From positions 1 through 64,000 of the forward strand of contig NIVC01003088.1 of NCBI GenBank assembly GCA_002269645.1: a stretch of DNA of 64,000 bases, in the 5' to 3' direction. The position numbers and the translations under genes were made by a program. How positions within the stretch are numbered: position 1 is the stretch's first letter; every line of letters starts with the position of its first letter. Below, one piece after another: positions 2,323-60,990 of the stretch. This DNA is from Macrostomum lignano. Taxonomy: Eukaryota. Under the pieces are notes generated by a model. That model worked only from the letters and a program-made list of their open reading frames with translations, had not been told where the DNA came from and ran no database searches.

Positions 2323-3786
2323 TACTAGAAACTAGAAACTGTATAAGATATATTTGCAGCAATAGATTATTTATAACATTTATACTTTTCTAGGCCTATT
2401 TAAATTGTTTAAAAAAGCTAACTTTTTTATTATTTTATAATGATTAATGACTACAGCTATTTTGTAATTCCAGTAGGGCCTATAGTCTTCTATCAGATGC
2501 ATATCTTAAAAAAGGCCTTCTAAACTTACTTATTCTCACTAGTTAGGCCCTACCCTAATTTAAGCAAAAAATCAACTGTCTATATTTGTATAATAAATAA
2601 GAAAAAATTAAAAATGACTTAAATTATCTATTAAGTAGGACTACTTAGAGTTTTAAATGTAAACAAAGTCTAAGTAAAAAAGTAAAAAAATAATCCTTAC
2701 TTTTCTTTAAGAAAATTGTCAGCTGTGTCATTGTATAAATTCATTTTTCAACAATGGATTGGCATTAATTTTATTACTAGGCCTAGAGTTAGAGCTTGAA
2801 AGTGAAAAAAAGATCTTAATGGTAAGTCGGTACTTAGTCCATAAAGTACTTAAAGTACTAAAGCGTTAAGGTTAAGATTATAAAATGTTAGGCCTAGTTG
2901 TTCTGTTCCCTAATCAAATGAAAGGTGCAGGGGTCAGGCTCCGTATGTAGAAAAAAACAAAAAGCAGACGGCAAAGCAAAGGGCTCAGAACTTAAAAATG
3001 AAGGCTGAAGTTTTATAAATTTAAATCACTCATGAAATGATAACAAAGTAATGTTTAATTAACAGAGAAACTATGATGTCAAACACTGGACAACTCTACG
3101 AGCAAGGTCATGAGTCCACGAGGTAATTTTTTGCAGGAAAGTACGACTTATGGCTTAAAAGATAAAATTTTTATTTGTTTTTCTTTTAAAATGTTTATAT
3201 ATATTTTTTAATATTAGAAAGGACTTTGTCAATTACTAATAAATCTTACTTAACAAAAACTTTTGATAATTTGTTTTAAAATTCATATGCCGGGCTTAAA
3301 GACAACAATTAACTGCGTTTGTTTTTAACGACTTTCATATATTTACCTGTCCCAAGGCCTCTAAATGTGTTGCCCCCCCCGAGCAGCAAAATTATGTATC
3401 CAATAGAAAGTTCGACGTCTCCGATACGTAACTTTTTTGTTGCAGGAACGTCACTGAACGTATCCAATTTTTACGATCCTCTATTGAACCTCGATCGTTT
3501 CTGCTACAAAAATGGTGAACAGATAATGCTCGTATTGTTTTTTTTTATTATTTATTCCACCATGCACCTGCCCGCTGCCTCCAAACCTTGCCCGCTGCCT
3601 ACCACTTGCGAGCCTGCGTACATCAAAGAAGGTTAGCGAGAACAACTTTAGCACCTGCAATTTTTTCAAAGATTTCATGAGCAATGCTGTAAGCCAGTAG
3701 GCTTTTCCGGTGTTGTTTTGTTGATTGCACAATTGTAGGGAGGCAGCAGGCAGGTGAAAGGCAGAGGGCAGGTGAGTGGCAGACCC

Positions 3787-3793
3787 TATAAAT
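3787..3793 (+). promoter_or_regulatory. TATA box of peptide gene copy A, preceded by clustered CAGGTG/CACCTG E-boxes
   Basis: CCCTATAAATG lies about 110 nt upstream of ATG 3899. It is conserved in copies B (7581-7587, minus) and C (10088-10094). GCAGGTG is repeated just upstream. Confidence 0.65.
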
Positions 3794-3898
3794 GCGAGCT
3801 GCTCAAGTCGCAGAGAAATCAAGCTCAACTCTCACTCTCCTGCTACAAGTTTTACTCTCTCTGCTTGCAACTCAGCCACATCCAATCGTCTGCTCAAC

Positions 3899-4325
3899 AT
3901 GAAGGTGCTCTGCTTCTGTCTGCTGGCTCTCCTGGCGATGCAGGTAAGCGAGCAACTCGGATATTTTCAACAAAAGGGAATACTCGTACATTTGCTCTCA
4001 GAATGCCGTAAAGTGTTGATTCTGTCTCGGTCCTTAATCCAACTTACCCGGCTCAAGTCCTGATCATGCGGTCAGATTACCTGATCTCTCGAGCTCTCAG
4101 TCCCTGAGCAAGTCTCTCCGCCCCGACCTCCTCTCGCAGCTCGACTCCGGCCTCGCCTGCAGCGGCAGCGACCGCTCCTGCGCCGGCACCTGCTACAGCC
4201 CGAGAACGCACCGCTGCATTGACGGCTACTTCCTGTGCCCCAGGTACCACTGGAAGTGCGGCGTGGCCTGCTACAATCCGTGGATGTACCGCTGCGTGAG
4301 GGGCCAGCTGAAGCTTCGCGGCTAG
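3899..4325 (+). CDS. Secreted 8-Cys CBM52-like peptide, copy A (exons 3899-3943 and 4140-4325; alternative in-frame acceptor at 4101)
   Basis: MKVLCFCLLALLAMQ|LDSGLA signal peptide, with a GTAAG donor and a CTCTCGCAG acceptor in phase 0. Mature peptide is CSGSDRSCAGTCYSPRTHRCIDGYFLCPRYHWKCGVACYNPWMYRCVRGQLKLRG*. The C-x3-CY-x-P-x3-RC-x2-G unit occurs twice. Confidence 0.85.
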
Positions 4326-5899
4326 CTGTGATGGCAAGGATGACCTCTGCGCGCTGCGCCTGCTGGTATTGGTCACGGATGTCCGACTGAATGACCGTCC
4401 ACTGCTTGACTCTGATTGGCGCTCTTTCATGCAGAAATATATATTGGCCGAATTATTACATTGAGCTCAAATTACAAATACAAATTGTTCAAACTGTATA
4501 CTGAGTTTGCTATCGCAGGAATCGCCCTGCGCACTCTGCACCTGGGTGTTTTGGGGACAACGGTTTGCCGCTGATCATTAGCGATTATACAGATGCGTGT
4601 AGCTGCAAGAGATTAATGGAGATTAATGCTACATAATCCAAATTCTGTCAGTAAGGCAAGGATGACCATTCGGTTATTATTAGACTACATCGAATTCGAT
4701 AACCGCTATAACTTCATATTGCAGGTGTGTAAAATGGGACACTGGACTACAGCTTTTCCATCTTACCACAATTACGAATAACATGTAATAACCTGTACTA
4801 CATGTACTTGTATACTGGATGCTGAGTTGAAAATGGTGATTGGGGATCAAATCCGTGCTCTTGTCACTCACCCACTTTTGCCATGATATCAGGTGTTTGT
4901 CAGTACGACTAACTCTTTTTACGAGCAATTTCCCCCCCCCCACCCCGTTAGGGATGCAACAAGTGAAGAGATAATTTTTGGAATCAACTAAATGTACGTT
5001 TTGACCTTGTTGAGCCACTTAAACGCCAAAAGACATAGGCAGAGCAAAAGCAAGTGCCACAACAGACTGTCACAACCGGTCCAAAAAGGGGAAGCGAACC
5101 CCAACGCCAAATGAAAGCGGGAGGGAGAGACATTCGGGCCAAATCAAATCAACGAAGCGCAGAAGAAATAAAACAAGACGGACCGGACCTGCCAGGTCAA
5201 AGCGCCAGCAGCTCCACCTGTCGCAACTCGCTGCGATCGAGAACCGCGCCAGAGACCGAGGCTGCAGAAGTCGACGAGGCGGAACTCGCGCAGGCCATCA
5301 GAGGTTCTCAGGATCAAGCCAGTGGCACTAACGCAGGCTTCTGTCTCGACCGCTTCCAGCACTCGAGCCCGTCGGTCGGGAACACGTCGGACGGTTGGCA
5401 TGTTGCCAGAACTGCAACTGGGCTAGGAGCTCGCCACGCACCGGTACTCGTTGATGCTGCTCATGAATGGCGATGTTAATATCCATGCGCGCGCGGAGCA
5501 GGGCCTTTGCAGGTTTGGCCACTTTGCAGAACCAGTCTAGTTTGCCGACTATCGCGAATGCCCGAGCTCAGAAACTCTGCGTCCAAGTCGCCGAGCAGAC
5601 TGATGTCAAAGTGGCAGCTGACAGCGACAGGACCGGCCACAGGCTCGAGCGGCAGGGCAGGCGGCAGTGCGAGCAGCTGTCTCGCATGGAATTAAAATAT
5701 TGTATTGGACTGTCTAGCAGACGCCATCCGCTTAGGGCCGCCGCGACAGGTTTCTCATCCTCCCAATTTCTGTCTCACGTCCAGGGAGTCCGGGATAGCA
5801 GCCGAATCAAATCTCCCCTCTCTCCTATGTCCGGCTCTCCTCTGGTTTAGCGTCAGCTTCGTCCTGGTCGTCGTCCTCAAGCTCGCTGGGGGCGCATTC

Positions 5900-6030
5900 G
5901 AGCTTGCAGCGAGCAGGCGGCCTGTCAGCTAGCTCCTCTTTATTGCCACTTGTCGGTAGGGCCTTCTCGCGCGTAAGGCATCTTTGAGGGCCTGCACGGT
6001 CTTGCTGCACAGTGCGGAGTCCCTTTTGAG
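5900..6030 (-). pseudogene. Frameshifted SAP-domain remnant inside a decayed GC-rich coding-like stretch (about 4950-6600)
   Basis: Minus-strand translation across one frameshift reads SALCSKTVQALKDALR/EKALPTSGNKEELADR, matching the SAP motif, followed by an acidic tract (ELEDDDQDEAD). Flanking frames contain stops. Confidence 0.45.
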
Positions 6031-7049
6031 TGCAGTGCTTGGCAAATCAGGCTGGCGAGAAATATTTTGCCAAAATCCGCCAACTCAGCGGCCGCGACAC
6101 GAGACTAAATAGCATAAAGTGCAAGTAGGAGGCGGCCCTTCAATGCTTCGACTACCAACAACTCCCAATATTGACCCTTGGCATCTCACCGACCCCTATG
6201 AGCCAAAGATCTTCAAATATTCTACTCATGAGGCCTGACCTCTCAGCAATTCGATTCTTTCATGGCGATTCTGTATAGCGCCAATGTATCCAGTACACCC
6301 CTTTGCGCCAATCAGCACTGCGCTTCAGTGCAGCCTTTCCAGGCGTCCAGATCTCACCAGCACGTCGATCACACGTGTCTGCATCAGCTCTAACTTCGTT
6401 GGTCACTGGCCTTTACCCAGGCGTAGCTTCTGGACCTTAGCAGGTGGCACCAGGTGACTCTTGAAACCCTGATGCGAATTTCTCGACATTCTCAGCTATT
6501 CTCTCCAGCATTCCGTAATCACCCCGACGCCGTCGGCACCTTCACCTAGCTGAGGATGTCCAGCAGTTGAGGCTTGCCCACTACCATAAATTACTATTCA
6601 TAAACTACAGTATTTTTTCTAATAAGCTGGATTAGAAAGTAAACAGTTATATACTTGTACAAGTACATGGCTTAACATGGCAGTTTCATGTGCAATGGAA
6701 CTAGTGCTATTGCTTGAACAGACACTGCGTGAACTGCAGTTTCCAATGGCTCAATGTTATACAGCTATTCCAGCATTGATGCGCGCATTGCTAAAAACTC
6801 ATATCGAGTGCCACTGAGATATAAAAAACCGATTTAACACGTATGCAGCTCATGCAAACAATTCGCTTTGTAATTTGCAGCTCAACTTTTATTAATCAGC
6901 TGATATTGATTTCTCAGATACAATTATGGAACTGATAAAATCTCATGAAACAGCGCCAATCAGAGTCAAGCAGTGGACGGTCATTCAGTCGGACATCCGT
7001 GGCCACTACCAGCAGGCGCAGCTCGCAGCGGTCATCCTTGCCATCACAG

Positions 7050-7476
7050 CTAGCCACGAAGCTTCAGCTGGCCCCTCACGCAGCGGTACATCCACGGATT
7101 GTAGCAGGCCACGCCGCACTTCCAGTGGTACCTGGGGCACAGGAAGTAGCCGTCAATGCAGCGGTGCGTTCTCGGGCTGTAGCAGGTGCCGGCGCAGGAG
7201 CGGTCGCCGCCGCTGCAGGCGAGGCCGGAGTCGAGCTGCGAGAGGAGGTCGGGGCGGAGAGACTTGCTCAGGGACTGAGAGCTCGAGAGATCAGGTAATC
7301 TGACCACATGATCAGGACTTGAGCCGGGTAAGTTGGATTAAGGACCGAGACAGAATCAACACTTTACGGCATTCTGAGAGCAAATGTACGAGTATTCCCT
7401 TTTGTTGAAAATATCCGAGTTGCTCGCTTACCTGCATCGCCAGGAGAGCCAGCAGACAGAAGCAGAGCACCTTCAT
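7050..7476 (-). CDS. Secreted 8-Cys CBM52-like peptide, copy B (exons 7476-7432 and 7235-7050)
   Basis: Same structure as copy A with an S-to-G change (CSGGD). AATAAA at 6893-6888 on the minus strand. Confidence 0.85.
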
Positions 7477-7946
7477 GTTGAGCAGACGATTGGATGTGGC
7501 TGAGTTGCAAGCAGAGAGAGTAAAACTTGTAGCAGGAGAGTCGAGTTGAGCTTGATTTCACTGCGAGTTGAGCAGCTCGCATTTATAGGGTCTGCCACTC
7601 ACCTGCCCTCTGCCTTTCACCTGCCAGCTGCTGCCTCCCACCTGCCCGCTGCCTCCCACCTGCCCGCATGCGTCAGCGAGCGGTCAGCGAGAACAAATTT
7701 GCACCTGCACTTTTGTTTGCCGCTACGCTCGTAATTGTACGAGAGCTCTGCCTGAGCAGCAACGGTGCTGTATGCCACTGTGAAGGGTCTTTGGCTACGA
7801 GCAAGTCGTGCTACGAGTAGTTGAGCATCGTTTCAGTATCGAGTGGATGAATCTGAAAAGGTGGCTTCGCTCACCAAAAAAGTGCATGCAGGTTGCCTAT
7901 CAATGCGTTGAATAAGCTCAATATTTTATCAAACTCTTAGTTAATT

Positions 7947-9531
7947 AGTCGCCATAATCAACGCGCCGCCACTCCCGCTGCCCAACATCCTGACGCTGCC
8001 GCCAGAAACGCCGTTGCCGTCAGAGGACAGTTTTAACGTTGCCAGTCACCATGGCTGAAGTCGTAATGCTCGCCCAGAATACGCCGGGCGGCAAGGCGCT
8101 GGGTCCGGACGAAGTGCCCATCGAGATTAACCGCGTGCTCTCCGGTGAAATGGCACCCACGGAGTGGACCATGGCATTCGCATCGCCATTCCAAAAAAGC
8201 CGGGCACTACACGGCTAGACGAGCAAAGCGAAGTTGTTCAATCGGATGCTGCTATCGTGGTTGCAACCCATGCTGGATCCCTACCTGCAACCTGAGCAGA
8301 ACGGGTTTCGGCCCCACCGTGGCACAGTGGCGCAGATCCTAGCTCTTTGCCGAATCATCCAGGAGGCGCGCACGCGCCAGTTGGACCTGATTGTTGTCTT
8401 CATTGACTTCATGAAGGCATTCGACTCGGTTGCGAGGGCTGCGCTCCCGCATGTGCTCCGAGCGTATCATGTACCAGAACAGCTGTTCTCCGCCATAATG
8501 ACGTTGTACTGTGCTACGAGAGCAGCTGTGATGACGCCGGACGGCCTGTCGGACTCTTTCGAGACATCCTCCGGGGTGCTCCAGGGGGACACTCTAGCGC
8601 CGTTCCTGTTCGTCCTGGTGCTTGACTGGGTGCTACGAACTGCTCTTCCTACCGACGAAGACGGCTTCCTATTGCGGCGACGCGTGGGTCGACGTCAACC
8701 GGAGAAACGGCTCAGCGTGCTTGGCTACGCCGATGACCTCGCCCTGCTGTCCTTGACCGTAGAGGGCGCCCAGCGCCAGCTGGACAAGCTGGTTAGCGCT
8801 GAAGCGAGCGTCAGCCTGGTGGTCAACACGAAGAAGACCGTTGTGCTCTGCTTGCCGGGCGACATCGAGGCCGCAATTTTCTGCCGAGGCGCTGGCGGGC
8901 AGGTAACGGAGCTTCCGCGCTGTCAGCAGTTCGTCTACCTCGGCGGTCTGGTACCTGACGTCCGCGGAGATCTGCGGCGTCGCCGCGGGCTCGCTTGGGC
9001 TGCCTTTCGCTCTGTGAGGGCGGTCCTGCAGTCCGAGGCCCTGCCTGACCGCCAGAGGGCGGCGCTGTTCCAGGCGGTGGTCGAGACCGTCCTGTTGTAC
9101 AACGCCGAGACCTGGACGCTGACGGATTCGCTCGAACAGCAAGTCAACGCGGCGCACGCTGGCCTGCTGCGCGCCGCCTTCAAGATCAGCGACGAGCGGA
9201 TCACCAACGCACACTCTATCGCCGTGCCGGCCTGGCCCGTCCAAGTGAACTGCTGCGACTTCGGCGACTCCAGCTGGCAGGCCACATCATCCGCGCCGAG
9301 TCCTACTGCCCGCAGCCGGTGCAGGAGGTGCTGCTGCTAACGCTGCAGGCACCCTACCGGCGCGGCCAGGCCCGAACTCGGCGTTTCGTCGACTGCCTGC
9401 TGGCCGACTCTGGCGCCCCGGACTCTGCCGGCGGTGCGGCCTTTGTTCGCGCCCAGGCTCTGAAGCGTGCGCTGTGACGCTGCATTTTTCCACCTGACAG
9501 CGTACTTTGTTGCTGTTGTTGTTGTTGTTGT
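7947..9531 (+). mobile_element. 5'-truncated, frameshifted RTE-type non-LTR retrotransposon (RT domain)
   Basis: Motifs KALGPDEVP, QNGFR, FIDFMKAFDSV, GVLQGDTLAPFLF, YADDLAL and FVYLG. RRLQLAGHIIR follows a frameshift near 9210. Stop at 9475-9477 and (TTG)n tail at 9507-9531. 10-bp TSD TTAGTTAATT at 7937-7946 and 9532-9541. Confidence 0.9.
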
Positions 9532-9560
9532 TTAGTTAATTGTAGTCAAAACAGCCTTTG

Positions 9561-9750
9561 AAACAGCAGTTAAACACCAGTTTAACACCAGTTTAACACC
9601 AGTTAAACAGCAGTTAAACACCAGTTATACATCAGGTAAACTTCAGTTAAACACCAGGTAAACACCAGGTAAACACCAAGTAAACACCAGGTAAACGCCA
9701 GGTAAACAACAGGTAAACACCAGGTAAACAACAAGTAAACACCAGTTGAA
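9561..9750. repeat. 11-bp minisatellite (G/T)TAAACACCAG
   Basis: Visible tandem units; many contain GTAAACA. Confidence 0.85.
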
Positions 9751-10198
9751 ACCAGCTGCACCTCCAGCAGTCTCAGTTCGAGAGAGCATCAGAGACCTGT
9801 AAATTACAGGTTGTTTACAGTGTACGTGGACTTTATAACTAACTGAAAAATATTTTGTAGAAGGAAGGCAATTACGAGTAGTAAAGTCCTGAACTCTAAT
9901 TGTCACTGAGTATTGTATACCGATTGCGCAATCAACAAGCCAACAGTAAGAAACCTACTGGCAAACAGCAATGCTCAGCAAATGTCTGAAAAAATGCAGG
10001 TGCAAATTTGTTCTCACTGACGCATGCGGGCAGGTGGTAGGCAGCAGCTGGCAGGTGAAAGGCAGAGGGCAGGTGAGTGGCAGACCCTATAAATGCGAGC
10101 TGCTCAACTCGCAGTGAAATCAAGCTCAACTCGACTCTCCTGCTACAAGTTTTACTCTCTCTGCTTGCAACTCAGCCACATCCAATCGTCTGCTCAAC

Positions 10199-10625
10199 AT
10201 GAAGGTGCTCTGCTTCTGTCTGCTGGCTCTCCTGGCGATGCAGGTAAGCGAGCAACTCGGATATTTTCAACAAAAGGGAATACTCGTACATTTGCTCTCA
10301 AAATGCCGTAAAGTGTTGATTCTGTCTCGATCCTTAATCCAACTTACCCGGCTCAAGTCCTGATCATGCGGTCAGATTACCTGATCTCTCGAGCTCTCAG
10401 TCCCTGAGCAAGTCTCTCCGCCCCGACCTCCTCTCGCAGCTCGACTCCGGCCTCGCCTGCAGCGGCGGCGACCGCTCCTGCGCCGGCACCTGCTACAGCC
10501 CGAGAACGCACCGCTGCATTGACGGCTACTTCCTGTGCCCCAGGTACCACTGGAAGTGCGGCGTGGCCTGCTACAATCCGTGGATGTACCGCTGCGTGAG
10601 GGGCCAGCTGAAGCTTCGTGGCTAG
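10199..10625 (+). CDS. Secreted 8-Cys CBM52-like peptide, copy C (exons 10199-10243 and 10440-10625)
   Basis: Same protein as copy B. TATA at 10088 and AATAAA at 10782-10787. Confidence 0.85.
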
Positions 10626-11441
10626 CTGTGATGGCAAGGATGACCGCTGCGAGCTGCGCCTGCTGGTAGTGGCCACGGATGTCCGACTGAATGACCGTCC
10701 ACTGCTTGACTCTGATTGGCGTTGTTTCATGAGATTTTATCAGTTCCATAATTGTATCTGAGAAATCATTATCAGCTGATTAATAAAAGTTGAGCTGCAA
10801 ATTACAATGCGAATTGTTTGCATGAGCTGCATACGTGTTAAATCGGTTTTTTATATCTCAGTGGCACTCGATATGAGTTTTTAGCAATGCGCGCATCAAT
10901 CAACCAGTCATGAAACTCCCAATGCGAGTTTGGAGCAGGCATCAATCAACGTATTGGTAATTCTTTCGTGATTGCGCTCAATCAGCTGTTTTAAATGTAT
11001 AATTGCATTATGAATTGTCATACCCGTGACTAATTCCACTAAACAGCTGATTACCTCTATTTAACAGGTGAGTATAAACTCTGTCTGAAAGGTAAATCTG
11101 TCTAACAGGTGACTCTGTCTAACAGGCTACTAACGCATGACTACTTAAGACACCATTCGGATTTGTTATTTTTGAAAAAATGTAACTTTTTGCAATAAAA
11201 GTACACGCTGTGTCTGCTTCTTGTAATAAACAACACCGCCCTCCTTCGGTCTTAGGACTTAGGACTGATTAATTACTCACCAAAGCTGCCCACTTGCAGC
11301 CATAGACATTTCTTTTCTGTACATTTGTAGTCTCAAGAAATTGCTACATCTTTGGTTAATCGAATTCAATCATAGCCAATTCTAAGCCTAAGGCTGATAA
11401 AAAATCATAATTTTGTTTAAACAATCAATCAATCATCCGAG

Positions 11442-12488
11442 ATGATACTCAACCGGCACAATTTCAACTTGGCTCTGCTGGTGCTCGGCTACTGTCTCAC
11501 CCGCTGCATCGCACCGTCCATGTCGAAGAAGGCCGACAAATTTGGCTTGCTGGAGGATGTGGATCAGGACGCGTGCACGGCAAAGACCGGGCCCTGTCCG
11601 TTCCAAATCTGTCCGGGAGATTTCTTTCGCGCAATCTGCGACCAGTTCTCACTGCTCAAGTCTACGACTCACCCGCTGAAGCTGACCGACCTTCATAACG
11701 ATTCCGTCTGCTGCAAAAACGGCGACTGCTCCGACTTGATCACCAATGCCGACACCGAGGCCGCCTGCTCGGTGACTCAGGAGGAGCTCGTTGACGCCAT
11801 TAAGGATACGTGAGTGTTCAGATGGAGTACTTTGTGTCATTTGTCCTGTCTCTTAGAACCCGTCTAACAGATGCAACCTGTTAGATAATGATGTAGCACA
11901 GATGATGTTTCACAGACCATGTCTAACAGACCCCTGTCCAACAGTTACAGTCCCTATCTAACATCTGCAGTCCCTGTTTAACAGCTGCAGTCCCTGTTTA
12001 ACAGCTTCAGTCCCTATCTAACAGCTACAGTCCTTATTTTACAGCTACAGTACAGTCCCTATCTAACAGCTACAGTCCTTATCTAACAGCTACAGTCCTT
12101 ATCTAACATACAGTCCTTATCCAACAGCTAAAATCCTTATCTAACAGCTACAGTCCTTAATCTAACAGCTACAGACCCTAACAGCTACAGTCCTTAATCT
12201 AACAGCTACAGTCTCTATCTAACATCTACAGCCATATCTAACAGCTAGAGTCTCTATCAAACAGCTACAGACCCATCTAACAGCTACAGACCCTATCTAA
12301 CAGCTACAGACCCTATCTAACAGCTACAGACCCTATCTAACAGCCACAGTCCCGCAACACACTCCAGCACGAACTGTTTCACATCGGCCAACTGTGTCAT
12401 ACAGCACCCAGAGTCGCTGGCTCGTCTAGAAAAGAAAGTTTGCAATCTGACTATGAAGATAGTCAATGGATTCTACTACTGTACTTAG
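11442..12488 (+). CDS. Orphan secreted Cys-rich protein, about 168 aa (exons 11442-11809 and 12350-12488)
   Basis: Hydrophobic N-terminus (NLALLVLGYCLTRCIA). The ORF 'stop' overlaps the donor AC|GTGAGT. The phase-2 acceptor CCACAG at 12349 opens TPATHSSTNCFTSANCVIQHPESLARLEKKVCNLTMKIVNGFYYCT*. This gives 12 Cys after the signal peptide. Confidence 0.65.
11930..12345. repeat. About 20-bp intronic minisatellite CTATCTAACAGCTACAGTCC
   Basis: Visible tandem units inside the predicted intron. Confidence 0.9.
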
Positions 12489-14998: not shown

Positions 14999-17900
14999 TC
15001 AGTTTAACGATTCGCCCGCGTCTTCTAATCCGAAGACCCCTCCGTCGTCGTCGACAACGCCAACTCCGCCGATGCTGTCGGTTTGACAGGCGGTCAAATT
15101 GTAGCAGACGTCGTTTCCGGGACTAATAATTGCATTATTATGACTATCATCGTTAGCATTATGAAGATTATTGTTATTTTCATCGTTGTTATCGGTGAAA
15201 TCTAATAGCATCGTTGGCGAAGTCTGCGTAGCCATGTTCTCAGCCGATACGAATACGAAATGATGAGTCAGCGGAGGCGGCGGAGGTGGCGGAGGTGGCT
15301 GAAACTGCGGCTGATGCTGCTGCTGGTGGTGATGAACAGCAGGGAAAGCTGGGTGATAGTTATAGTGATGATAGAGCGGAGCAGATGGCACGCCCACGGG
15401 TTCGTACTTCATCAGGCCTGGGACGGTGGCGGCCGGCTCGATCCAGTAAGTGGCCGCTGGCGGTCCCTGCATCGGTGGTGGCGGTGGCGGCGGCGGAGGC
15501 AGCTGCTGCAACGCCGGAGACGCCGCTACCTGGTGTTGGGGAGCAGCAGTGCACTTGCGCATAGGGGCAGAGTACTGAGCATAGGGGAACTGCGAGAGCG
15601 GATGCTGCTGCTGCTGCTGCTGAGTCTGAGTGACTGCGGCAGCGGCGGCCGCGGCTACGGCTGCGTTGAAAGCGGAAATCGAGACGCCCGCAGCGGCTGT
15701 GTAAGATGAAGAAGCTTCGCCTTCCGCTACAGATGACGAGCCATTCTCGTTGTCGCTGTTGTTACATGTACTGGGCAAAGTCTTGCGATGCTGCAGCAGC
15801 TGCTGCTGATGCTGGTGCAGCTGGTCAATGGTGCACAGGTCCACGTCGGCCTTGTGCGTGCGCTTCTCCTTGGCTCGCCGGTTTTTAAACCACACCTTTG
15901 TGTTGGTTGGGTGTGCGAGGCTGTTCGGGACACAGTGCTGCTGCAGCTTATTTAGTACGGATACTAGTACGGATTCTTCCTCGGGGAGGGGCGGATTCTT
16001 CCTGAGGAGTGGCGGATTCTTCCTGGGGGAGGGGCGAATTCTTCCTGAGGAGTGGCGGATTCTTCCTGGGGAGGGGCGGATTCTTCCTGGGGGAGGGGCG
16101 GATTCTTCCTGAGGAGTGGCGGATTCTTCCTGGAGGAGGGGCGGATTCTTCCTGGAGGAAGGACGGATTCTTCATGAGGGAGGGACAGATTCTTAGAAGA
16201 GGGGTGGACTCTTAGGGTAGGTAGGGGCGGATTCTTCCTGGGGAGGGGCGAATTCTTTCTGAGGAGTGGCGGATTCTTCCTGGGGGAGGGGCGGATTCCT
16301 CCTGAGGAGTGGCGGATTCTTCCTGGGGGAGGGGCGAATTCTTCCTGAGGAGTGGCGGATTCTTCCTGGGGGAGGGGCGAATTCTTCCTGGGGGAGGGGC
16401 GGATTCTTCCTGAAGAGTAGCGGATTCTTCCTGGGGGAGGGGCGGATTCCTCCTGAGGAGTGGCGGATTCTTAATGGGGGAGGGCGGATTCTTCCTGGGG
16501 GAGGGGCGGATTCTTCCTGAGGAGTGGCGGATTCTTAATGGGGGAGGGGCGGATTCTTCCTGGGGGAGGGGCGGATTCCTCCTGAGGAGTGGCGGATTCT
16601 TAATGGGGGAGGGGCGGATTCTTCCTGGGGGAGGGGCGGATTCTTCCTGAGGAGTGGCGGATTCTTAATGGGGGAGGGGCGGATTCCTCCTGAGGAGTGG
16701 CGGATTCTTCCTGGGGGAGGGGCGGATTCTTCCTGGGGGAGGGGCGGATTCTTCCTGAGGAGTGGCGGATTCTTAATGGGGGAGGGGCGGATTCCTCCTG
16801 AGGAGTGGCGGATTCTTAATGGGGGAGGGGCGGATTCTTCCTGGGGAGGGGCGGATTCTTCCTGGGGGAGGGGCGGATTCTTCCTGAAGAGTGGCGGATT
16901 CATAGGGTAGGAAGGGGCGGATTCTTCCTGGAGGAAGGACGGATTCTTCATGAGGGAGGGACGGATTCTTAGAAGAGGGGTAGGTAATAGGGGCGGATTC
17001 TTCCTGGGGAGGGGGCGGATTCTTCCTGATGGAGGGGCGGATGCGAATTCCTACGGATACATTAAAAACTGTTTTAAATAGATTTGATCCAGACCAAAGC
17101 ACTGTCAAATTTCATAATACACGCGCGCCCACCAACTTACCAGCACTTTCTTGTAGGGCAATCCGACAAGCCTGCTTAGCTCGTCCACAACGGGATAATC
17201 GGGATATTTCGATTTGACAAAAACTTTCTCCAGCTCAACTTTCTGCTCTTCGGTCAGATTGGTGCGGCATCTTTTCGGCGCCTCAGAGGGCATGAGAGAG
17301 CCGCAGGCATTGCTGGCGTGACTGCCCTCAACATTAGCGGCTAGACTAGAGGGTAAAATCAGCATCTTGCCAGACTCCGTATCCTGCAGATGAAGCGGCA
17401 GATGCTGGCGATGAAGCTGTTGGGGAATCTGCGGAGGCAACTGCGGATGCTGATAGACGCTGTGAGAAGGCAGAATCCTGGGCTGGTGCAGCGGGAAGTA
17501 CTGGCAACCGGACGAGACGGCTGCAGCGGCTGCCCACATGTCCAAGCCGTAGGCAGGGGGAGCCGCATGGAGCACCGGGGGCTCCGGCTTGAGGTCCAAC
17601 GCTGAGCCAGAGTCTGGGATCGTAGTAATTGAAGTAGCTTCATCATCAGCAGCGGCTGTAGCTGTATGGGACTCAAAGATGAAGGATGTGCCAGGTACGC
17701 AGCAGTACGACGATCCGTTAGTGGAATCCTGGCCAGTTTGCTGAGCTGAGTTCAGCTGAGACAGGCCATCGTTGTCGGCATGATCTGCAGGCGGTGGTGA
17801 AGCGGCAAACAGGCTGTCGCCGCAGCATGCAGCGGCAACGGAGACGTCCGGGTCGGATTTTGACGCTATTGTTGACAACGACGCGATGCCAGTTTGGTCA

Positions 17901-18034
17901 GCCGGTCCGGCAGCGGCCTGCAGTAGGAACTTGGCATCGTCGTCGGAGACCACCAGAGCTGCATTATGCTGCTGCTGGTGATGCAGAAGTAATCCGTCCT
18001 CATTCGAAGGCGATGACAGCTTTGCTTCATTCAT
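14999..18034 (-). CDS. Divergent K50 paired-class homeobox protein (goosecoid-like), about 596 aa (exons 18034-17141 and 15895-14999)
   Basis: Spliced homeodomain PKRCRTNLTEEQKVELEKVFVKSKYPDYPVVDELSRLVGLPYKKVL|VWFKNRRAKEKR. Phase-0 GTAAGT...AAAG intron between homeodomain positions 46 and 47, typical of the PRD class. K50 present. Poly-A, P, Q and H tracts. Confidence 0.85.
15965..17040. repeat. About 20-22 bp intronic minisatellite GGGGAGGGGCGGATTCTTCCT
   Basis: Tandem units filling the homeobox intron; explains several spurious ORFs. Confidence 0.95.
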
Positions 18035-23512: not shown

Positions 23513-26500
23513 TCATTCATCAGCTTCAACCTCATCTTGCCAAAGACCTGGCAGCCGAGTTGCAGGCTGCACGACCAACTTCATCGCGCCCACGTGCACA
23601 ATTTTCTTCTGACCTCGGTCTTCACCATGACGCGAAAGCTTCACTACTTCATAATTCACTGGCGAGGTCCTTCGCACCACCCGGTAAGGTCCTGACCAGG
23701 GTGCGTGGTGTTTATGTGACCATCTGGAGTCACGCTGTCTGAGCGCCAGTGGCGGCGTAAATATCCATACCAACGCATTCTCAGCAAACTTAGTTTTTTT
23801 CACTTTACGATCGTAAAATTTCTTTTGAATTCGCTGAACGGCCTTGGTGGTCTTCCTGATCGATTCGTACGCCTCAATCAACCGCTCTTTCGTGTCCTGA
23901 GCGAACGAAGCAGGTGTCAGGGCAGGCTCCGGCTCTCTATAAACTAAATCGATCGGCAACACCATTTCACGACCAGTCAGAACGAAGTGCGGCGTAAAAC
24001 CAGTCGATGCGCTAACAGAGCTTCGGTAGGCCATCAGGCAGTGCGGAATGACGTCTTCCCAGTCTTCGGGTTCAACTTTCTGAAGATAACATCTCAGCAC
24101 GCCATGGAGAGTGCGATGGAAACGCTCCACCAGGCCGTCACATTGCGGATGGAATGCTGTCGTTCGAGTTTTCTGAATTTCGAAGACCTTACACAGGTTT
24201 CTAACGATCTTGCCGTCAATGTTCTGCCCTCGATCCGAATGTAAAACGTGCGGCGCACCATACCGACTGATCCAGTGCGTAAACAGTGCGTTCGCAATCG
24301 TTGTAGCCTTCTCATCGGGTAATGGTACGAGTTCGACCCATTTACTAAAATAATCGATGATTGTCAATAATCGGTCGTTGCCGTGACGGGACGTGGCAAT
24401 TTTAACGACATCGATGGCCACTCTCTGCATCGGAAATCCTGATGACATTGGCCGGAGTGGGGCTTTGGCAGCTGACGTTGGCTTCGCCCGCTGGCACTGA
24501 ATACACTCCCTTACACACAGGTTCACATCATCCATCATCTTCGGCCAGTAGAAGCGCTGCTTTATTGCTTCTGCCGTCTTAGCTACACCAAAATGACCTT
24601 GGGCATGAATTTCCTCGATCACCTCACGTCGTCTTTTAAACGGCAAAACTAGAACTGGTTTTGTTTTAACTAATCGATGCATAATACCATTCACGAAGCA
24701 CAAATCATCAACCTTACTCATCAAAACAAGACTTTCTGGTGACATTTTGGCCTTTTCGTCTTCCATTAGAACAGTCTCACCTCTCGCTAGCTTTCGAAAT
24801 ACTGGACCAATACCACCATCCTTTAACTGTAATGCTCTCATCGATTCTCCATCTTCCTCCGTCTCAGCTTCACTACCATCACCTTCGGTGTCGGACTCTT
24901 CACCATCAGATGCGCGTGCCTCAAGCTGCTGTTTCCTTCTAGTCGCACCTACTGCATTACACTCTACCTGCTCTGTACCTACGCTATCCGTCTGACATTC
25001 TGCATCTGCCCTGCCTGGCGTCTCCGGACGACACGCTTCACAAAATCTTGGACAACGCGAAAGTGCATCTGCATTGGCATGCGTTCTACCTGGACGATGG
25101 ACCACTTCAAGATCAAACTCTTGCAACGCTTCCAGCCACCTTGCTAGCTGACCGGTTGGCTCTTTAAAGCCTAGCAGGTGAGTTAAGGCAGCGTGGTCAA
25201 CTCTAACTTGGAATTTATGACCTGCAAGATATGACCTAAACTTTTTGCAAGATTCTACAACTGCTAGCAGCTCTCTTCTAGTGACACAGTAATTTCTCTC
25301 TGCTGCATTTAAAGCGCGGCTGCTATAAGCAATTACTTTCTCTTGTCCTCTTTGCACCTGAGACAGGACACAGCCTATGCCAAAACCACTAGCATCTGTA
25401 TCTAATATAAACTGGCTGCTACCACTTGCAGTTTCAGGTAGAGCTAAGACTGGTGCCGAGGTTAGGCATTGCTTTAAAGTATTAAAACTCAGTTCCTGCT
25501 CACCAGACCAAGCAAACTGCTGGTTTTTTAGAGTGATTCGGCGCAACGGTTCGGCTATGGAGGAAAAATCTTTAATAAACCTTCGGTAATAAGATGCAAG
25601 GCCCAAGAAGCTCTGTACATCTTTCACTGTCTGTGGTCGAGGCCACTCACGAACTGCATGAATTTTCTCCTCATCAACAGAGATACCTTCTGGAGTAATT
25701 TTATGACCTAGGATCTTTATTGACTTAGAAGCGAATACGCATTTACTTGGCTTTAATCTAAGATTAGCTTCTTTTAGACGATGGAGGACTTTAGCAAGGT
25801 GGTTATTGTGCTCTTCTAATGACCTTCCCATGACTACAATGTCGTCTATATAGACTAGACATGCTTCCCACTTCAACCCTCGCAGCACCATATCCATCAG
25901 TCGTTGAAAGGTTGCTGGGGCATTTTTCAAACCAAATGGCATGACACGAAACTGATAAAGACCGTGATGGCACAGGAATGCGGTCTTTTCACTGTCCTCT
26001 TGATCAAGTTCTACCTGCCAATAACCTGACTGCATGTCCATAACAGAAAAATAAACATTACTAGCTAGAGCATCTAAGGTATCATCAATTCTTGGCAATG
26101 GATAGGCGTCTGCCTTGGTAACAGCATTAAGCTTCCTATAATCTACACAGAATCTAAAAGTTCCATCTTTCTTCCGCACTAAGACTACAGCTGCTGCCCA
26201 TGGAGATGCTGATGGAACGATCACATTGTCTTGCAACATGCTATCTATAATCTTCTTCTGCTCATTAATCGTCGGCAAATTCGTGCGTCTTAATGTCTCT
26301 TTGACAGGCAATGCACCTCCGGTATCTATCTTGTGCTTTAGCAAATCTGTTCTACCTAAGTTACCATCTGAAGCAAAGACACATTCGAACTCTTTTAAAA
26401 CTCTTCCTACTTCCTCAGTCTCATCTGCTGACAAATCCTTCGAAATGTTAAACTTGACCTCACTTCCTCCTTGGGTACTTTCACTCTTTAATGAACTCTC

Positions 26501-27409
26501 TTTTTCACCAGCGCTGCTTGCTGCACCCTGCCTAGAATCTAAACTTTCTCCTACAATGCATACCTGACCTTTCTGATCGAATGGAGTAAACTTTCCAATA
26601 CTACTTCCTGCTCGTAGTATAAGTTCTCTATCTACGTTTACATTAACCACTTTGGTTTGCATTCCTTCCTCTCTAAGTAAATCGATACCTCTAGCTACTA
26701 ATAGACCTGGAACACGATGATTTGGCTCTATTAAACCTGGTGCCAAGGATGCACCTGATTCTTTAGGCTTCAGCGATAATTGAACACTTTGACCTGGAGG
26801 AATCGATATGGTCTCTGCGACAGCAAGAAGTTGGAACTTAGGAATTTCTAAAGTTTTTCTGATTGGAATTGATTTGTTTAGGTTATTAAAAGTAATTATG
26901 CCTTGTGCTGGATGTACAGACACGTTAAATTGCTGCATAAAGTCTAAGCCTATAACCACATTCTGTTGGACATTGCTGCAGACAAATACCTCCTGCACGA
27001 AACTAAGCTGACCAAACGAGAAAGTGACTAGTTTCTTTCCTAAGACCTTTAGATTGTTTCCATTGGCTACTGTAAGCTGAACATCTGTTTTAGTGAGATT
27101 TGATCTAGGCTGATTAATAATGCTGCTTGAAACTATGGTAACACTTGAACCTGTATCTACAAGACAAGAAACTTTCTTAGAAAAGACGCTAGCTGACACA
27201 TACATGCCTTTGTCAAAATCTAAACTAAGGTTAATTCTCTCTACCCTACTAGTAAAGTGTTCTAAATTACATTCTTCGACTTCCTCAATTACATTTTTCA
27301 GAGCTGTGGGGCCATATGAGGTCCTGGCGGGAATCTGCCCCTTGATCCAGCCATGTTGCCGTTTGGGCAGTTCCGCTTCAGGTGTCTTGGCTGTCTGCAC
27401 TTGAAGCAA
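23513..27409 (-). CDS. pol: Gypsy Pol: aspartic protease, RT, RNase H, integrase with GPY/F motif
   Basis: Motifs LVDTGSS, FCVDYRKLN, YPLPRIDD, YIDDI, TDAS, H-x-GxxKT...C-x2-C, DYFSKW, HSDRG and WSGPY. Probably expressed by -1 frameshift from gag. Confidence 0.95.
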   Translation of the reverse strand: MLQVQTAKTPEAELPKRQHGWIKGQIPARTSYGPTALKNVIEEVEECNLEHFTSRVERINLSLDFDKGMYVSASVFSKKVSCLVDTGSSVTIVSSSIINQPRSNLTKTDVQLTVANGNNLKVLGKKLVTFSFGQLSFVQEVFVCSNVQQNVVIGLDFMQQFNVSVHPAQGIITFNNLNKSIPIRKTLEIPKFQLLAVAETISIPPGQSVQLSLKPKESGASLAPGLIEPNHRVPGLLVARGIDLLREEGMQTKVVNVNVDRELILRAGSSIGKFTPFDQKGQVCIVGESLDSRQGAASSAGEKESSLKSESTQGGSEVKFNISKDLSADETEEVGRVLKEFECVFASDGNLGRTDLLKHKIDTGGALPVKETLRRTNLPTINEQKKIIDSMLQDNVIVPSASPWAAAVVLVRKKDGTFRFCVDYRKLNAVTKADAYPLPRIDDTLDALASNVYFSVMDMQSGYWQVELDQEDSEKTAFLCHHGLYQFRVMPFGLKNAPATFQRLMDMVLRGLKWEACLVYIDDIVVMGRSLEEHNNHLAKVLHRLKEANLRLKPSKCVFASKSIKILGHKITPEGISVDEEKIHAVREWPRPQTVKDVQSFLGLASYYRRFIKDFSSIAEPLRRITLKNQQFAWSGEQELSFNTLKQCLTSAPVLALPETASGSSQFILDTDASGFGIGCVLSQVQRGQEKVIAYSSRALNAAERNYCVTRRELLAVVESCKKFRSYLAGHKFQVRVDHAALTHLLGFKEPTGQLARWLEALQEFDLEVVHRPGRTHANADALSRCPRFCEACRPETPGRADAECQTDSVGTEQVECNAVGATRRKQQLEARASDGEESDTEGDGSEAETEEDGESMRALQLKDGGIGPVFRKLARGETVLMEDEKAKMSPESLVLMSKVDDLCFVNGIMHRLVKTKPVLVLPFKRRREVIEEIHAQGHFGVAKTAEAIKQRFYWPKMMDDVNLCVRECIQCQRAKPTSAAKAPLRPMSSGFPMQRVAIDVVKIATSRHGNDRLLTIIDYFSKWVELVPLPDEKATTIANALFTHWISRYGAPHVLHSDRGQNIDGKIVRNLCKVFEIQKTRTTAFHPQCDGLVERFHRTLHGVLRCYLQKVEPEDWEDVIPHCLMAYRSSVSASTGFTPHFVLTGREMVLPIDLVYREPEPALTPASFAQDTKERLIEAYESIRKTTKAVQRIQKKFYDRKVKKTKFAENALVWIFTPPLALRQRDSRWSHKHHAPWSGPYRVVRRTSPVNYEVVKLSRHGEDRGQKKIVHVGAMKLVVQPATRLPGLWQDEVEADE

Positions 27410-28734
27410 ACTCTGCCAGATTGGCCTGTTGGAAAGTTTGACTGCTGTCCCTGGTGAATGTTTGGACTCTGGACTGTCATCAGATTTGGCACAGGTGCAC
27501 CACTATTTGGAGGAAACCTTTGAGGTCCAGTATGCCTCTGGGTTGGATTTACCTTGGATTTCTGGATAGGTTCAGGTGCCTTCTGGCCAACTGTTTGGCA
27601 GTACTGGGTCTGGTTACTAGCCATCAGGTTTGACTTGGACTTGGCATTGGCCTGACCTAGAGGACCCTGGCTTTGAACTAGTCTTCTTGTCTCTCTAAGT
27701 TGTTGGGCAATTCTAAGAGCTTGTTCTGGGGATGAAACCTCCAGCATGTTGGATAAATGCTCTGTAACCTTAGGGTCATTGACACCTAGGATGAACTGGT
27801 CAAGAATCTGGTCCTGAATAATCTGACTAAATCCATCCTCAGGATAGGCTTTGGTTGCCAAATTCTGCAAACTAGTCAAGAATTGCTCAAAAGTTTCATT
27901 GTCTTGACGTGTTCGAGTACGCAACTCTCGGCGTAATGTAGTCAAGTTCTTTTGGCTACCATGACGGCTAGACAAGAATTGCAAAAGTGACAAATAAGTT
28001 GCAGCTGGTAGTTGGTCAAGAGGAGTACCAGAAGGCTTGTTGTGCATTGCACATTGATTGGCTAACCAAGCTTGATAGGTTAGGAAAGCAGGTCCTAAAA
28101 ATGCAGCCATAGTCCTGATTCTTACTATGTCTGGCTGATTTGGGAAGTTGCTAATGTAATTGTCTACTCTAGCTACAAAGGTACTAAATTCCTCTTTGCC
28201 ATCAAACATAGATGGTTTCGGAATAGATGGCATTGGCAATTGGGACTGAAACTGTTGCTGATTATTAGGATTTAGGCTAAGTGGAGCCCACTCTAAGTCA
28301 GATTGGAGAAGTCTACTACTTCTTGGATAAATTAGAAGTCTAGGTCTAGCTTGTTCAGATTGCTCTGCTTGAGCTGCAGCATTTGTTAGAGCTTGAGGCA
28401 AATCTACATGGTTACCAACTAGGTCTGTATCACTCTCTTCAACTCTCTCGCCACTTGAATGATTGAGATTACCATCATTTTGAACTTGGTTAGTAGGCAA
28501 ATGATGTGCTACAAGCATATCAATAGATTCTAATTGTGAAGGAACAACGTTCTCGGAACTATTGCCATTCTGATTTTGTGACCTTTGACTTTGCCATGCA
28601 GCACTAGCATCTCCAACATCATCTGAGTTGGCATTGAGTAGAGGTTGATGCAATCCATTACTAGGCACGGCTTGGTCAATGAGTGACTCATTTCGGTTAA
28701 TGGTTCGGCTTCTTAGTTCTAGAGTATCCATCAC
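27298..28734 (-). CDS. gag: Gypsy Gag with CCHC zinc knuckle
   Basis: 478 aa ORF with PSMFDGKE, a capsid-like region (RTRQDNETFEQFLTSL...QFILG) and CFKCRQPRHLKRNC. Confidence 0.92.
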   Translation of the reverse strand: MMDTLELRSRTINRNESLIDQAVPSNGLHQPLLNANSDDVGDASAAWQSQRSQNQNGNSSENVVPSQLESIDMLVAHHLPTNQVQNDGNLNHSSGERVEESDTDLVGNHVDLPQALTNAAAQAEQSEQARPRLLIYPRSSRLLQSDLEWAPLSLNPNNQQQFQSQLPMPSIPKPSMFDGKEEFSTFVARVDNYISNFPNQPDIVRIRTMAAFLGPAFLTYQAWLANQCAMHNKPSGTPLDQLPAATYLSLLQFLSSRHGSQKNLTTLRRELRTRTRQDNETFEQFLTSLQNLATKAYPEDGFSQIIQDQILDQFILGVNDPKVTEHLSNMLEVSSPEQALRIAQQLRETRRLVQSQGPLGQANAKSKSNLMASNQTQYCQTVGQKAPEPIQKSKVNPTQRHTGPQRFPPNSGAPVPNLMTVQSPNIHQGQQSNFPTGQSGRVCFKCRQPRHLKRNCPNGNMAGSRGRFPPGPHMAPQL

Positions 28735-60369: not shown

Positions 60370-60990
60370 TTAACGAGTGGATTTAGCATCGCCGGACGCT
60401 ACGGATTCAACAGCACGCAGAGCTTCTCTAGTCTGACTGAGCAAATCCATCAGCTGATGCTTCGTACACACAAATCGAACTCCAGTTGGCTGTCCGACAG
60501 TCGCCAGGCCAAGCTGATAATGAACTGGCTCATCTGACCGACCAGAATTGGCGGCACCCGTTTCGTAGACTAATCGCCATTGGGTGTCAACAATGTGACC
60601 CAGCGACGCCTCTTGCCCAGTTGCCAGGGGAGCTAGCAGAGCTCGACGCTCGAGACTAGGCCAGGCCGAGCTGACACAATCAGTCAGCACTGACAGGTGT
60701 TCGCCAATCAAGCCGCGCTCCTCCGCGCAGGCTAGCAATACTTTCAAGCTCACACCGCGACTCAATGCTTCAGCTAGTAGGGCGCAGAGCACTGAACAGA
60801 TTTCTTTGTCTAAAGGATCCGATGGAGCAGCTGGGGCGGCTTCGTTATTGTCAGACTTTTTAAACCAATCTCTATCACTGGAATAGTGCAACATCAGACA
60901 GGCGGCCTCGCACAGGCCACGGAATCGGTCGGCGGGCAGTTGCTCTACGCAACAGCGAAATACGGTGGCAAATTGTTGTGGCAGCTCCAT
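60370..60990 (-). CDS. COMMD3: COMM domain-containing protein 3 (single coding exon, 206 aa)
   Basis: MEL start, and a C-terminal COMM domain HIVDTQWRLVYE...RFVCTKHQLMDLLSQTREALRAVE resembling COMMD3 HITDVSWRLEY...FSCSMEQLQDLVGKLKDA (recalled). Confidence 0.8.
   Translation of the reverse strand: MELPQQFATVFRCCVEQLPADRFRGLCEAACLMLHYSSDRDWFKKSDNNEAAPAAPSDPLDKEICSVLCALLAEALSRGVSLKVLLACAEERGLIGEHLSVLTDCVSSAWPSLERRALLAPLATGQEASLGHIVDTQWRLVYETGAANSGRSDEPVHYQLGLATVGQPTGVRFVCTKHQLMDLLSQTREALRAVESVASGDAKSTR

Follow-up and report, generated by a model that had tools for sequence, protein, structure and literature searches.

Invertebrates recognize fungi with secreted, non-catalytic beta-1,3-glucan binders, the betaGRP/GNBP proteins, which combine a GH16-like domain with an N-terminal beta-sandwich CBM39. 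A different carbohydrate-binding module, CBM52 (Carb_bind, PF10645 in Pfam), is known from Eng1 of S. pombe, an enzyme of glycoside hydrolase family 81 (GH81) with three such modules at its C-terminus (PMC3627985); by the same secondary account, which cites Martin-Cuadrado 2008, the enzyme requires CBM52 to act on insoluble beta-1,3-glucan and to be targeted to the septum. The module also occurs without an enzyme, as in a stand-alone secreted protein of M. oryzae (GBP) that consists of a signal peptide plus CBM52 and is described as glucan-binding (bioRxiv 10.1101/2025.07.03.663104). Here we describe three copies of a small gene in a 64-kb stretch of flatworm DNA (Macrostomum lignano contig NIVC01003088.1, positions 1 to 64,000; "the window," meaning the whole stretch analyzed), each encoding a predicted signal peptide and a single CBM52 module. 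Our preferred reading, to which we give a probability of about 45%, is a secreted CBM52 mini-protein that likely binds beta-1,3-glucan and serves as a cationic, soluble lectin in defence or recognition.

How does this peptide compare with the described systems? Like the CBM52 of Eng1, it has a module of ~50 residues with the pattern CG..Y.P..Y.C..LCP..CG.ACY.P..Y.C; it differs in consisting of one module with no enzyme, in two additional cysteines (C1 and C3) that make its halves symmetric, and in being strongly cationic. Like the M. oryzae GBP it would be a secreted protein with a predicted signal peptide, a CBM52 module, and no catalytic domain, acting outside the cell, a likeness drawn from description; the GBP, however, is fungal and acts on its own wall and in plant-pathogen interplay, whereas the flatworm peptide would target foreign glucan. 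The betaGRP/GNBP proteins, which are much larger and have no sequence relationship to the peptide, are functional analogues only, for the proposed role in glucan recognition.

The family is known already, M. lignano homologues are machine-annotated with the domain, and fungi have secreted CBM52 proteins that stand alone. The new points are that animals carry CBM52 mini-proteins—of which the literature we searched makes no mention—together with their cationic character and the triplicated, intron-containing locus. The CBM52 papers found in that search concern fungi or unrelated matter, and none mentions Mlig018268, the M. lignano gene closest to ours; literature on Macrostomum with glucan or horizontal gene transfer yielded nothing relevant.

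A CBM52 Module with Eight Cysteines

Does the peptide belong to CBM52, as the earlier note on this DNA proposed from the translation? In an hmmscan search against Pfam, where PF10645 has a curated gathering cut-off of 25 bits, the precursor scored 33.2 bits (E = 6e-8) and the mature region 34.8 bits (E = 2e-8), the match covering positions 1-49 of the 49-position model. Because these E-values are so low and the scores exceed the curated threshold, the match is not due to chance, and at the level of sequence the peptide is a genuine CBM52/PF10645 member. All six core cysteines and the CY-x-P and Y/H-x-C positions of the PF10645 pattern (CG..Y.P..Y.C ... LCP ... CG.ACY.P..Y.C) are present, and the cysteine and aromatic pattern first read from the translation recurs residue for residue. 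Two further cysteines, C1 and C3, complete a 4-Cys unit, C-x6-C-x3-CY-x-P-x4-C, which is duplicated within the domain with x6 between its two occurrences. The precursor, 76-89 amino acids (aa) long, is a predicted signal peptide followed by one module with no glycoside hydrolase attached, and this bears out the description of a stand-alone protein free of a catalytic domain. Attachment to a glycoside hydrolase is not strictly defining for CBM52, since the stand-alone fungal GBP exists.

A galaxin-like family had been named as a potentially better home for the peptide. Galaxin_repeat (PF24748) gave no match in a listing extended to E<=10 (HMMER filters drop most matches above ~0.1), no family scored better than PF10645, and the peptide is without Cys-Cys doublets. 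The two kinds of repeat do have a short hairpin core in common, CG-x3-Y-[DN]-P-x4-C-x2-G, and 4 of the 132 relatives described below also match PF24748, which hints, as a lead from sequence comparison, that CBM52 and galaxin-like repeats may be distantly related. The strongest of these cross-matches, P0080, has Fib_succ_major domains and a lipoprotein-like N-terminus, and looks bacterial. Matches to the zf-HIT (E = 0.047) and late-nodulin (E = 3.4) families of Pfam were rejected as cysteine-spacing noise.

The 89-aa peptide had no match in a word-indexed homology search, and a 40-sequence profile of the domain retrieved P0101 alone; an exhaustive phmmer search of 1.84 billion representatives (E<=1e-3) returned 132 relatives, 107 of which also match PF10645. 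We aligned 192 full-length domain instances, namely 191 homologous domains and that of the window. The symmetric 8-Cys pattern is the commonest form (156/192, window included), and 13 instances show a 6-Cys pattern without C1 and C3, which we take to be the usual fungal form; to sequences of this presumed fungal type the window domain is 35-50% identical.

Gene Structure and Duplication

The earlier note proposed three two-exon genes, each with a TATA box and a GT-AG intron, over a span (3899-10625) that proves to run exactly from the start codon of copy 1 to the stop codon of copy 3. A three-way alignment confirms this structure: reading frame, splice sites, and TATAAAT box are intact in 3/3 copies (Table 1). 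The box lies 112 nucleotides (nt) 5' of the ATG in each copy, and an AATAAA signal follows the stop by 157 nt in copies 2 and 3. Packed within 6.7 kb, copies 1 and 2 stand tail-to-tail and copies 2 and 3 head-to-head; no further copy of the gene was found in the 64-kb window. The duplicated units, 690-875 nt long and 97-99% identical, span promoter, intron, and 3' untranslated region (UTR). The genes are ~99% identical, and their coding sequences (CDS) differ only in S38G (codon 38 AGC/GGC; Ser38 of copy 1 is the sole amino-acid difference from copies 2 and 3) and in one synonymous CGC/CGT change.

Table 1. Coordinates of the three gene copies and of the repeats between them (positions in the window)
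Feature	Position	Strand	Details
Copy 1, duplicated unit	3743-4431	+	promoter to 3'UTR; repeat families D3/D4, inverted repeats I2/I3; 97-99% identity to copies 2 and 3
Copy 1, TATAAAT box	3787-3793	+	18-nt GGCAGGTGA-type repeats with CAGGTG E-boxes before the box
Copy 1, gene	3899-4325	+	exon 1 3899-3943, intron 3944-4100 (GTAAGC...CTCAG), exon 2 4101-4325
Copy 1, exon 1 coding part	3899-3943	+	MKVLCFCLLALLAMQ, N-terminal part of signal peptide; aligns with MMKALCVCLLVLLAVS of M. lignano Mlig018268
Copy 1, intron	3944-4100	+	GT...AG, 157 nt, GC 0.46; alternative in-frame CAG acceptor ending at 4139 gives a 196-nt intron
Copy 1, exon 2 coding part	4101-4325	+	stop codon included; PF10645 match at residues 41-85; 8-Cys domain C35-C81
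Copy 2, duplicated unit	6775-7649	-	inverted repeat I1, 875 nt, 99% identity to copy 3
Copy 2, gene	7476-7050	-	exon 1 7476-7432, intron 7431-7275, exon 2 7274-7050
Copy 2, signals		-	TATA complement 7581-7587; AATAAA 6893-6888
Copy 2, exon 1 coding part	7432-7476	-	
Copy 2, exon 2 coding part	7050-7274	-	stop included; alternative acceptor gives exon start 7235
Copy 3, duplicated unit	10026-10900	+	TATA 10088-10094; AATAAA 10782-10787; from repeat search and three-way alignment
Copy 3, gene	10199-10625	+	exon 1 10199-10243, intron 10244-10400, exon 2 10401-10625
Copy 3, exon 1 coding part	10199-10243	+	
Copy 3, exon 2 coding part	10401-10625	+	stop included; alternative acceptor CAG ends at 10439
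Degenerate non-LTR (long terminal repeat) reverse-transcriptase fragment	8000-9470	+	RVT_1 match 7e-22 for open reading frame 8234-9340; spacer between copies 2 and 3, outside the gene
11-nt satellite AAACACCAGGT	9561-9745		about 17 copies; spacer between copies 2 and 3

Splicing is needed for translation, because exon 2 alone has no ATG, GTG, or TTG start before V69. The sequence encoded by exon 1 and the signal peptide of the M. lignano relative are homologous (MKVLCFCLLALLA versus MMKALCVCLLVLLA). The N-terminus, M-K followed by VLCFCLLALLAM, is signal-peptide-like and conserved with that relative, and the product is probably secreted, by way of a predicted classical signal peptide. Which acceptor is used? 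Three in-frame AGs are available (4100, 4112, and 4139; in copy 3 the latter two correspond to 10412 and 10439). Acceptor 4100 yields an 89-aa product common to all copies, MKVLCFCLLALLAMQSLSKSLRPDLLSQLDSGLACSG[S/G]DRSCAGTCYSPRTHRCIDGYFLCPRYHWKCGVACYNPWMYRCVRGQLKLRG, with MKVLCFCLLALLAMQ supplied by exon 1 and SLSKSLRPDLLSQLDSGLACSG(S/G)DRSCAGTCYSPRTHRCIDGYFLCPRYHWKCGVACYNPWMYRCVRGQLKLRG by exon 2. Acceptor 4139, a CAG preceded by a better pyrimidine tract (GCCCCGACCTCCTCTCGCAG), drops 13 residues (SLSKSLRPDLLSQ) and gives a 76-aa precursor, MKVLCFCLLALLAMQLDSGLA joined to CSGG..., whose alignment with the M. lignano protein of 69 aa (MMKALCVCLLVLLAVSVNSTDA joined to CGGG...) is free of gaps. 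In this shorter precursor, cleavage after SGLA (between G-L-A and C, in keeping with the -3/-1 rule) would leave the mature peptide of 55 aa that was first proposed; with acceptor 4100 the mature N-terminus is uncertain. The domain is the same with either.

Could the copies be non-functional or artefactual—collapsed or misassembled repeats, or dead duplicates carried by transposable elements (TEs)? They are surrounded by TE fragments and satellites, one M. lignano paralogue (Mlig018268g3, P0034) is frameshifted, and at 99% identity the copies carry no selection signal among themselves. We nevertheless consider this very improbable. Open reading frame (ORF), splice sites, and TATA box are intact in every copy, and AATAAA is kept in copies 2 and 3; the ratio of nonsynonymous to synonymous divergence (dN/dS) against M. 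lignano is 0.33, with all cysteines conserved. Moreover, the copies differ by scattered single-nucleotide polymorphisms and have different flanks, which makes them distinct loci. As far as sequence can tell, they are recently duplicated, intact copies of a flatworm gene.

Relatives in Macrostomum and Beyond

The closest relatives (77-80% aa identity) are products of M. lignano Mlig018268: those of g1/g2 (P0006; PAA46576.1, PAA69175.1) at 77% and that of the frameshifted g3 (P0034; PAA45991.1) at 80%. The UniRef entry for P0006, A0A267DBQ1, bears the automatic name [quoted passage not shown] The Mlig018268 gene (10001-10210 of locus L001, on NIVC01001342.1) has a TATA promoter, no intron, and a GC content at third codon positions (GC3) of 0.83. 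Across 40 kb of M. lignano DNA its similarity to the window, 81% nt identity, is confined to the CDS, plus one 54-nt TE fragment. Over 47 codons, synonymous divergence (dS) is 0.59 and dN/dS 0.33, and all eight cysteines are kept.

The two genes share a predicted signal peptide (MKxLCxCLLxLLA) and one 8-Cys PF10645 module; in both, the promoter has a TATA box, GC3 is very high, and the domain is cationic. Mlig018268 differs in being intronless and only 69 aa long, without the C-terminal VRGQLKLRG tail of the window peptide and, if acceptor 4100 is used, without its 13-residue linker; one copy occupies its 20-kb locus versus three in 6.7 kb here, and the flanking DNA is unalignable. The g3 product equals P0006 up to residue 51 and is then out of frame, so that g3 is either a pseudogene, an allele with a frameshift, or an error of assembly. 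A short ORF with the same signal peptide (MRALCVCLLVSLALSVN*) lies some 2.5 kb downstream of Mlig018268 on the opposite strand (L001 12713-12669, minus strand); it lacks a Cys-rich domain after the leader and ends in a 3'UTR that resembles that of Mlig018268; it may be the remnant of a paralogue or a gene reusing the same leader exon.

How far does the module extend beyond Macrostomum? Outside this genus, the highest identity to the window domain is 57%, and the nearest sequences are unlabelled metagenome proteins with the 8-Cys pattern. Most of the 132 relatives carry no taxon label; the source was looked up for 30. One is from the tardigrade Hypsibius exemplaris (OWA54156.1, BV898_18572), encoded by an intron-containing gene that adjoins a zf-C4 nuclear-receptor gene. 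This protein, automatically named "Tenascin-X," has the same 4-Cys half-repeats in an animal context, scores 40 bits against PF10645, and has 15 stretches that match the window peptide, with a summed E of 9e-22; it differs in its 664 aa of many tandem repeats, which make it no mini-protein, and its identity is ~35-44%. Another relative, a secreted protein of 112 aa, is encoded on a 1.29-Mb metagenome contig that is probably animal, with neighbours matching 7tm_1 (a G-protein-coupled receptor family), iGluR, and HTH_animal. The module also occurs in two eukprot protists, in Piromyces finnis (GH16 plus two modules), in Nannocystis, and in Dokdonia. Among the relatives it is fused to GH16 (Piromyces P0138), GH81, CBM96, ricin-B, and L-type lectin domains. 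The nearest non-flatworm relatives, the metagenome proteins P0037/P0133, P0019, and P0027, join the 8-Cys module to a papain-family protease, CBM96, or a ricin-B lectin, fusions that are absent from the CBM52 papers found.

This distribution bears on the suggestion that the peptide is fungal-type and possibly acquired from a fungus by horizontal transfer. A fungal enzyme served to define the Pfam family, the CBM52 literature found is entirely fungal, the M. lignano relative is intronless, codon usage is atypical relative to neighbouring genes, and the distribution in animals is patchy, with few animals among the 30 relatives looked up. Yet the module is also present in protists, in bacteria, on a contig that is probably animal, and in an intron-bearing tardigrade gene whose neighbours are of animal type; for this reason the inference from fungal type to horizontal transfer, and a fungal origin of the flatworm gene, are not supported by the sequences compared. 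The nearest non-Macrostomum sequences are at most 57% identical, unlabelled, and of the 8-Cys rather than the 6-Cys form taken as fungal, and the window gene is interrupted by a spliceosomal intron, follows a TATA promoter, and shares its predicted signal peptide with the M. lignano gene. Given what the two genes share and a dS of 0.59, any transfer would predate the divergence of the window and M. lignano genes. A 50-residue domain carries little phylogenetic signal, and we regard entry from a fungus as quite improbable.

Predicted Structure and Charge

An AlphaFold2 model built with the 40-sequence alignment is all beta, with eight short strands and a mean predicted local distance difference test (pLDDT) score of 96.5. 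Short beta-hairpins are thus a high-confidence prediction for the fold of the module, and its eight conserved cysteines presumably form four disulfides. No chain in the Protein Data Bank (PDB) matched the peptide by sequence or profile, no PF10645 member with a solved structure was found, and a Foldseek comparison of the model with the PDB gave nothing below E = 5.

Over its 53 residues the window domain carries a net charge of +6, and the M. lignano domain +5; the 191 homologous domains average -1.2 (standard deviation 3.0, maximum 6). Small, predicted to be disulfide-rich, and strongly cationic, the peptide fits the description of the cationic host-defence class. The same properties invite an explanation without carbohydrate: a cationic Cys-rich effector—a membrane-active antimicrobial peptide, a toxin, a protease inhibitor, or a reproductive or adhesive secretion—in which the CBM52-like fold would be a stable disulfide scaffold only. 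A net charge of +6 to +7 lies at the extreme of the family, and families of effector peptides are typically small, disulfide-bonded, and recently duplicated, as this peptide is with its four putative disulfides; some homologues also match galaxin-like repeats, and the sole remote fold resemblance is to a granulin-like conotoxin (Foldseek, E = 9, not significant). On the other hand, the conserved aromatic positions of the CBM are kept, and Pfam showed no defensin, toxin, or inhibitor match to E<=10. We hold such an effector to be possible, if doubtful.

Proposed Function

What might the peptide do? Judging by analogy with Eng1, its most likely ligand is an extracellular polysaccharide of the beta-1,3-glucan type, bound through conserved Tyr/His/Trp residues; the consensus CBM aromatic positions (CY-x-P, Y/H-x-C, FLCP) are present. 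We propose glucan binding because of homology with the Eng1 module and because modules of this kind co-occur with glucanases and other CBMs. Having no catalytic domain, the peptide would act as a soluble lectin and not as an enzyme accessory, and could coat or agglutinate microbes with glucan in their walls, for example fungi and oomycetes. That the lectin would be abundant and serve defence or recognition is proposed because of the exceptional positive charge together with the very strong codon bias. We infer its ligand, expression site, and biological role.

The codon bias is pronounced: GC3 of the gene is 0.92, compared with 0.5-0.6 in neighbouring genes, and the intron has a GC content of 0.46. 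The earlier note had called the codons GC-rich and host-like, which is true in that they resemble those of Mlig018268 (GC3 0.83) and fails in that they are far richer than those of the neighbours. An extreme GC3 beside a 46%-GC intron suggests, from composition, high expression. The promoters carry 4-5 CAGGTG/CACCTG E-boxes per copy within 260 nt 5' of the TATA box (3540-3800, plus strand; 7575-7835, minus; 9840-10100, plus), some of them inside 18-nt GGCAGGTGA-type tandem repeats. Together the three promoters hold 13 of the 47 such motifs in the window, where the background is 0.73 per kb, and this clustering suggests control by a basic helix-loop-helix (bHLH)- or Snail-type factor.

High expression would also suit a part in feeding. 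In culture, Macrostomum lignano is fed diatoms, which store glucan in the form of chrysolaminarin. The peptide might be a gut- or pharynx-secreted binder of this beta-1,3/1,6-glucan or of other diatom polysaccharides, acting as a non-catalytic helper that concentrates substrate or presents it to separate glucanases. The CBM52 assignment is the same as for a defence lectin, CBM52-type modules occur on GH16 and GH81 glucanases in relatives, and a very high GC3 is suggestive of the high expression typical of digestive secretions. But no glucanase gene was found beside the copies in the window, a soluble CBM free of any enzyme has no obvious catalytic benefit, and strong positive charge is unexpected in a helper that handles neutral glucan. 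Taken as one joint proposal, a feeding role seems unlikely to us.

Several points weigh against the defence or recognition lectin that we prefer. Given a CBM52 literature that is fungal or unrelated and that does not mention Mlig018268, function in an animal homologue is argued by analogy, and the ligand specificity of CBM52 rests on one characterized founder. The window domain is of the 8-Cys variant, with 35-50% identity to the presumed fungal 6-Cys type. Many other peptide classes would be just as compatible with the high charge and cysteine content. The copies have diverged too little from one another for a selection signal, and identity to the Mlig018268 locus is only 81% at the nt level, over the CDS only.

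Genomic Surroundings

Is the locus itself animal? The window neighbours are of animal type—a homeobox gene, a COMM-domain ORF, a Ty3/gypsy element, and a non-LTR reverse transcriptase (RT)—and the closest relatives of the three-copy genes are Macrostomum lignano genes. By these signs the genes sit in an animal genome, which on sequence evidence is most likely that of a Macrostomum species, or at a locus that is a divergent paralogue of the Mlig018268 one.

The homeobox gene (17105-18034 and 14999-15895, minus strand) has a ~1.2-kb intron inside the homeodomain: exon 1 stops at homeodomain position 45, the next ORF starts VWFKNRRAKEKR, and GC skew in the region is strongly positive. The 309-aa homeobox exon had no database relative at E<=1e-5 in a word-indexed search. 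The Ty3/gypsy element (23513-28734, minus strand) has an apparently intact 1298-aa pol ORF comprising protease, RT, RNase H, and integrase; the ORF before it, 478 aa long and without a family match, is presumably gag. A single-exon ORF of 206 aa (60370-60990, minus strand) shows a weak COMM-domain match (E = 4.8e-4, just under the Pfam cut-off), and its exact product has no record in the public collection of gene positions.

Closer to the copies, a 54-nt piece of the RT fragment listed in Table 1 matches the M. lignano locus L001 at 81%, and downstream of copy 3 a separate satellite repeats a 20-nt unit about 21 times (11932-12353). No convincing gene was found in the 2.5-kb spacer between copies 1 and 2. 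Two ATG-initiated antisense ORFs of 117 aa over exon 2 of copies 1 and 2 (4077-4430, minus strand; 6945-7298, plus strand) were rejected, being of low complexity (A/R/S-rich) and without a family match; most likely they arise merely because the sense strand codes with a high GC3.

Implications

More broadly, macrostomids, and possibly other small invertebrates, may use an unrecognized cationic mini-lectin on a CBM52 scaffold against fungal or oomycete walls or algal glucans, unrelated to betaGRP/GNBP and Dectin-type receptors, and CBM52 and galaxin-like repeats may form one ancient superfamily of glycan-binding hairpins in bacteria, protists, fungi, and animals. We put this wider proposal forward as speculative and on balance doubtful. 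If the peptide binds no glucan, the finding is that of an unstudied family of Cys-rich secreted peptides already auto-annotated in databases. If it does bind glucan, it would be a very small (~55 aa), easily synthesized animal glucan binder, and would point to a way for invertebrates to recognize fungal or algal glycans that is distinct from betaGRP/GNBP and C-type lectins. CBM52 would then shift from a "fungal" to a broadly distributed module, with the peptide a compact target for the first CBM52 structure. Because Macrostomum is tractable by RNA interference and transgenesis, the function of the peptide is directly testable in the animal.

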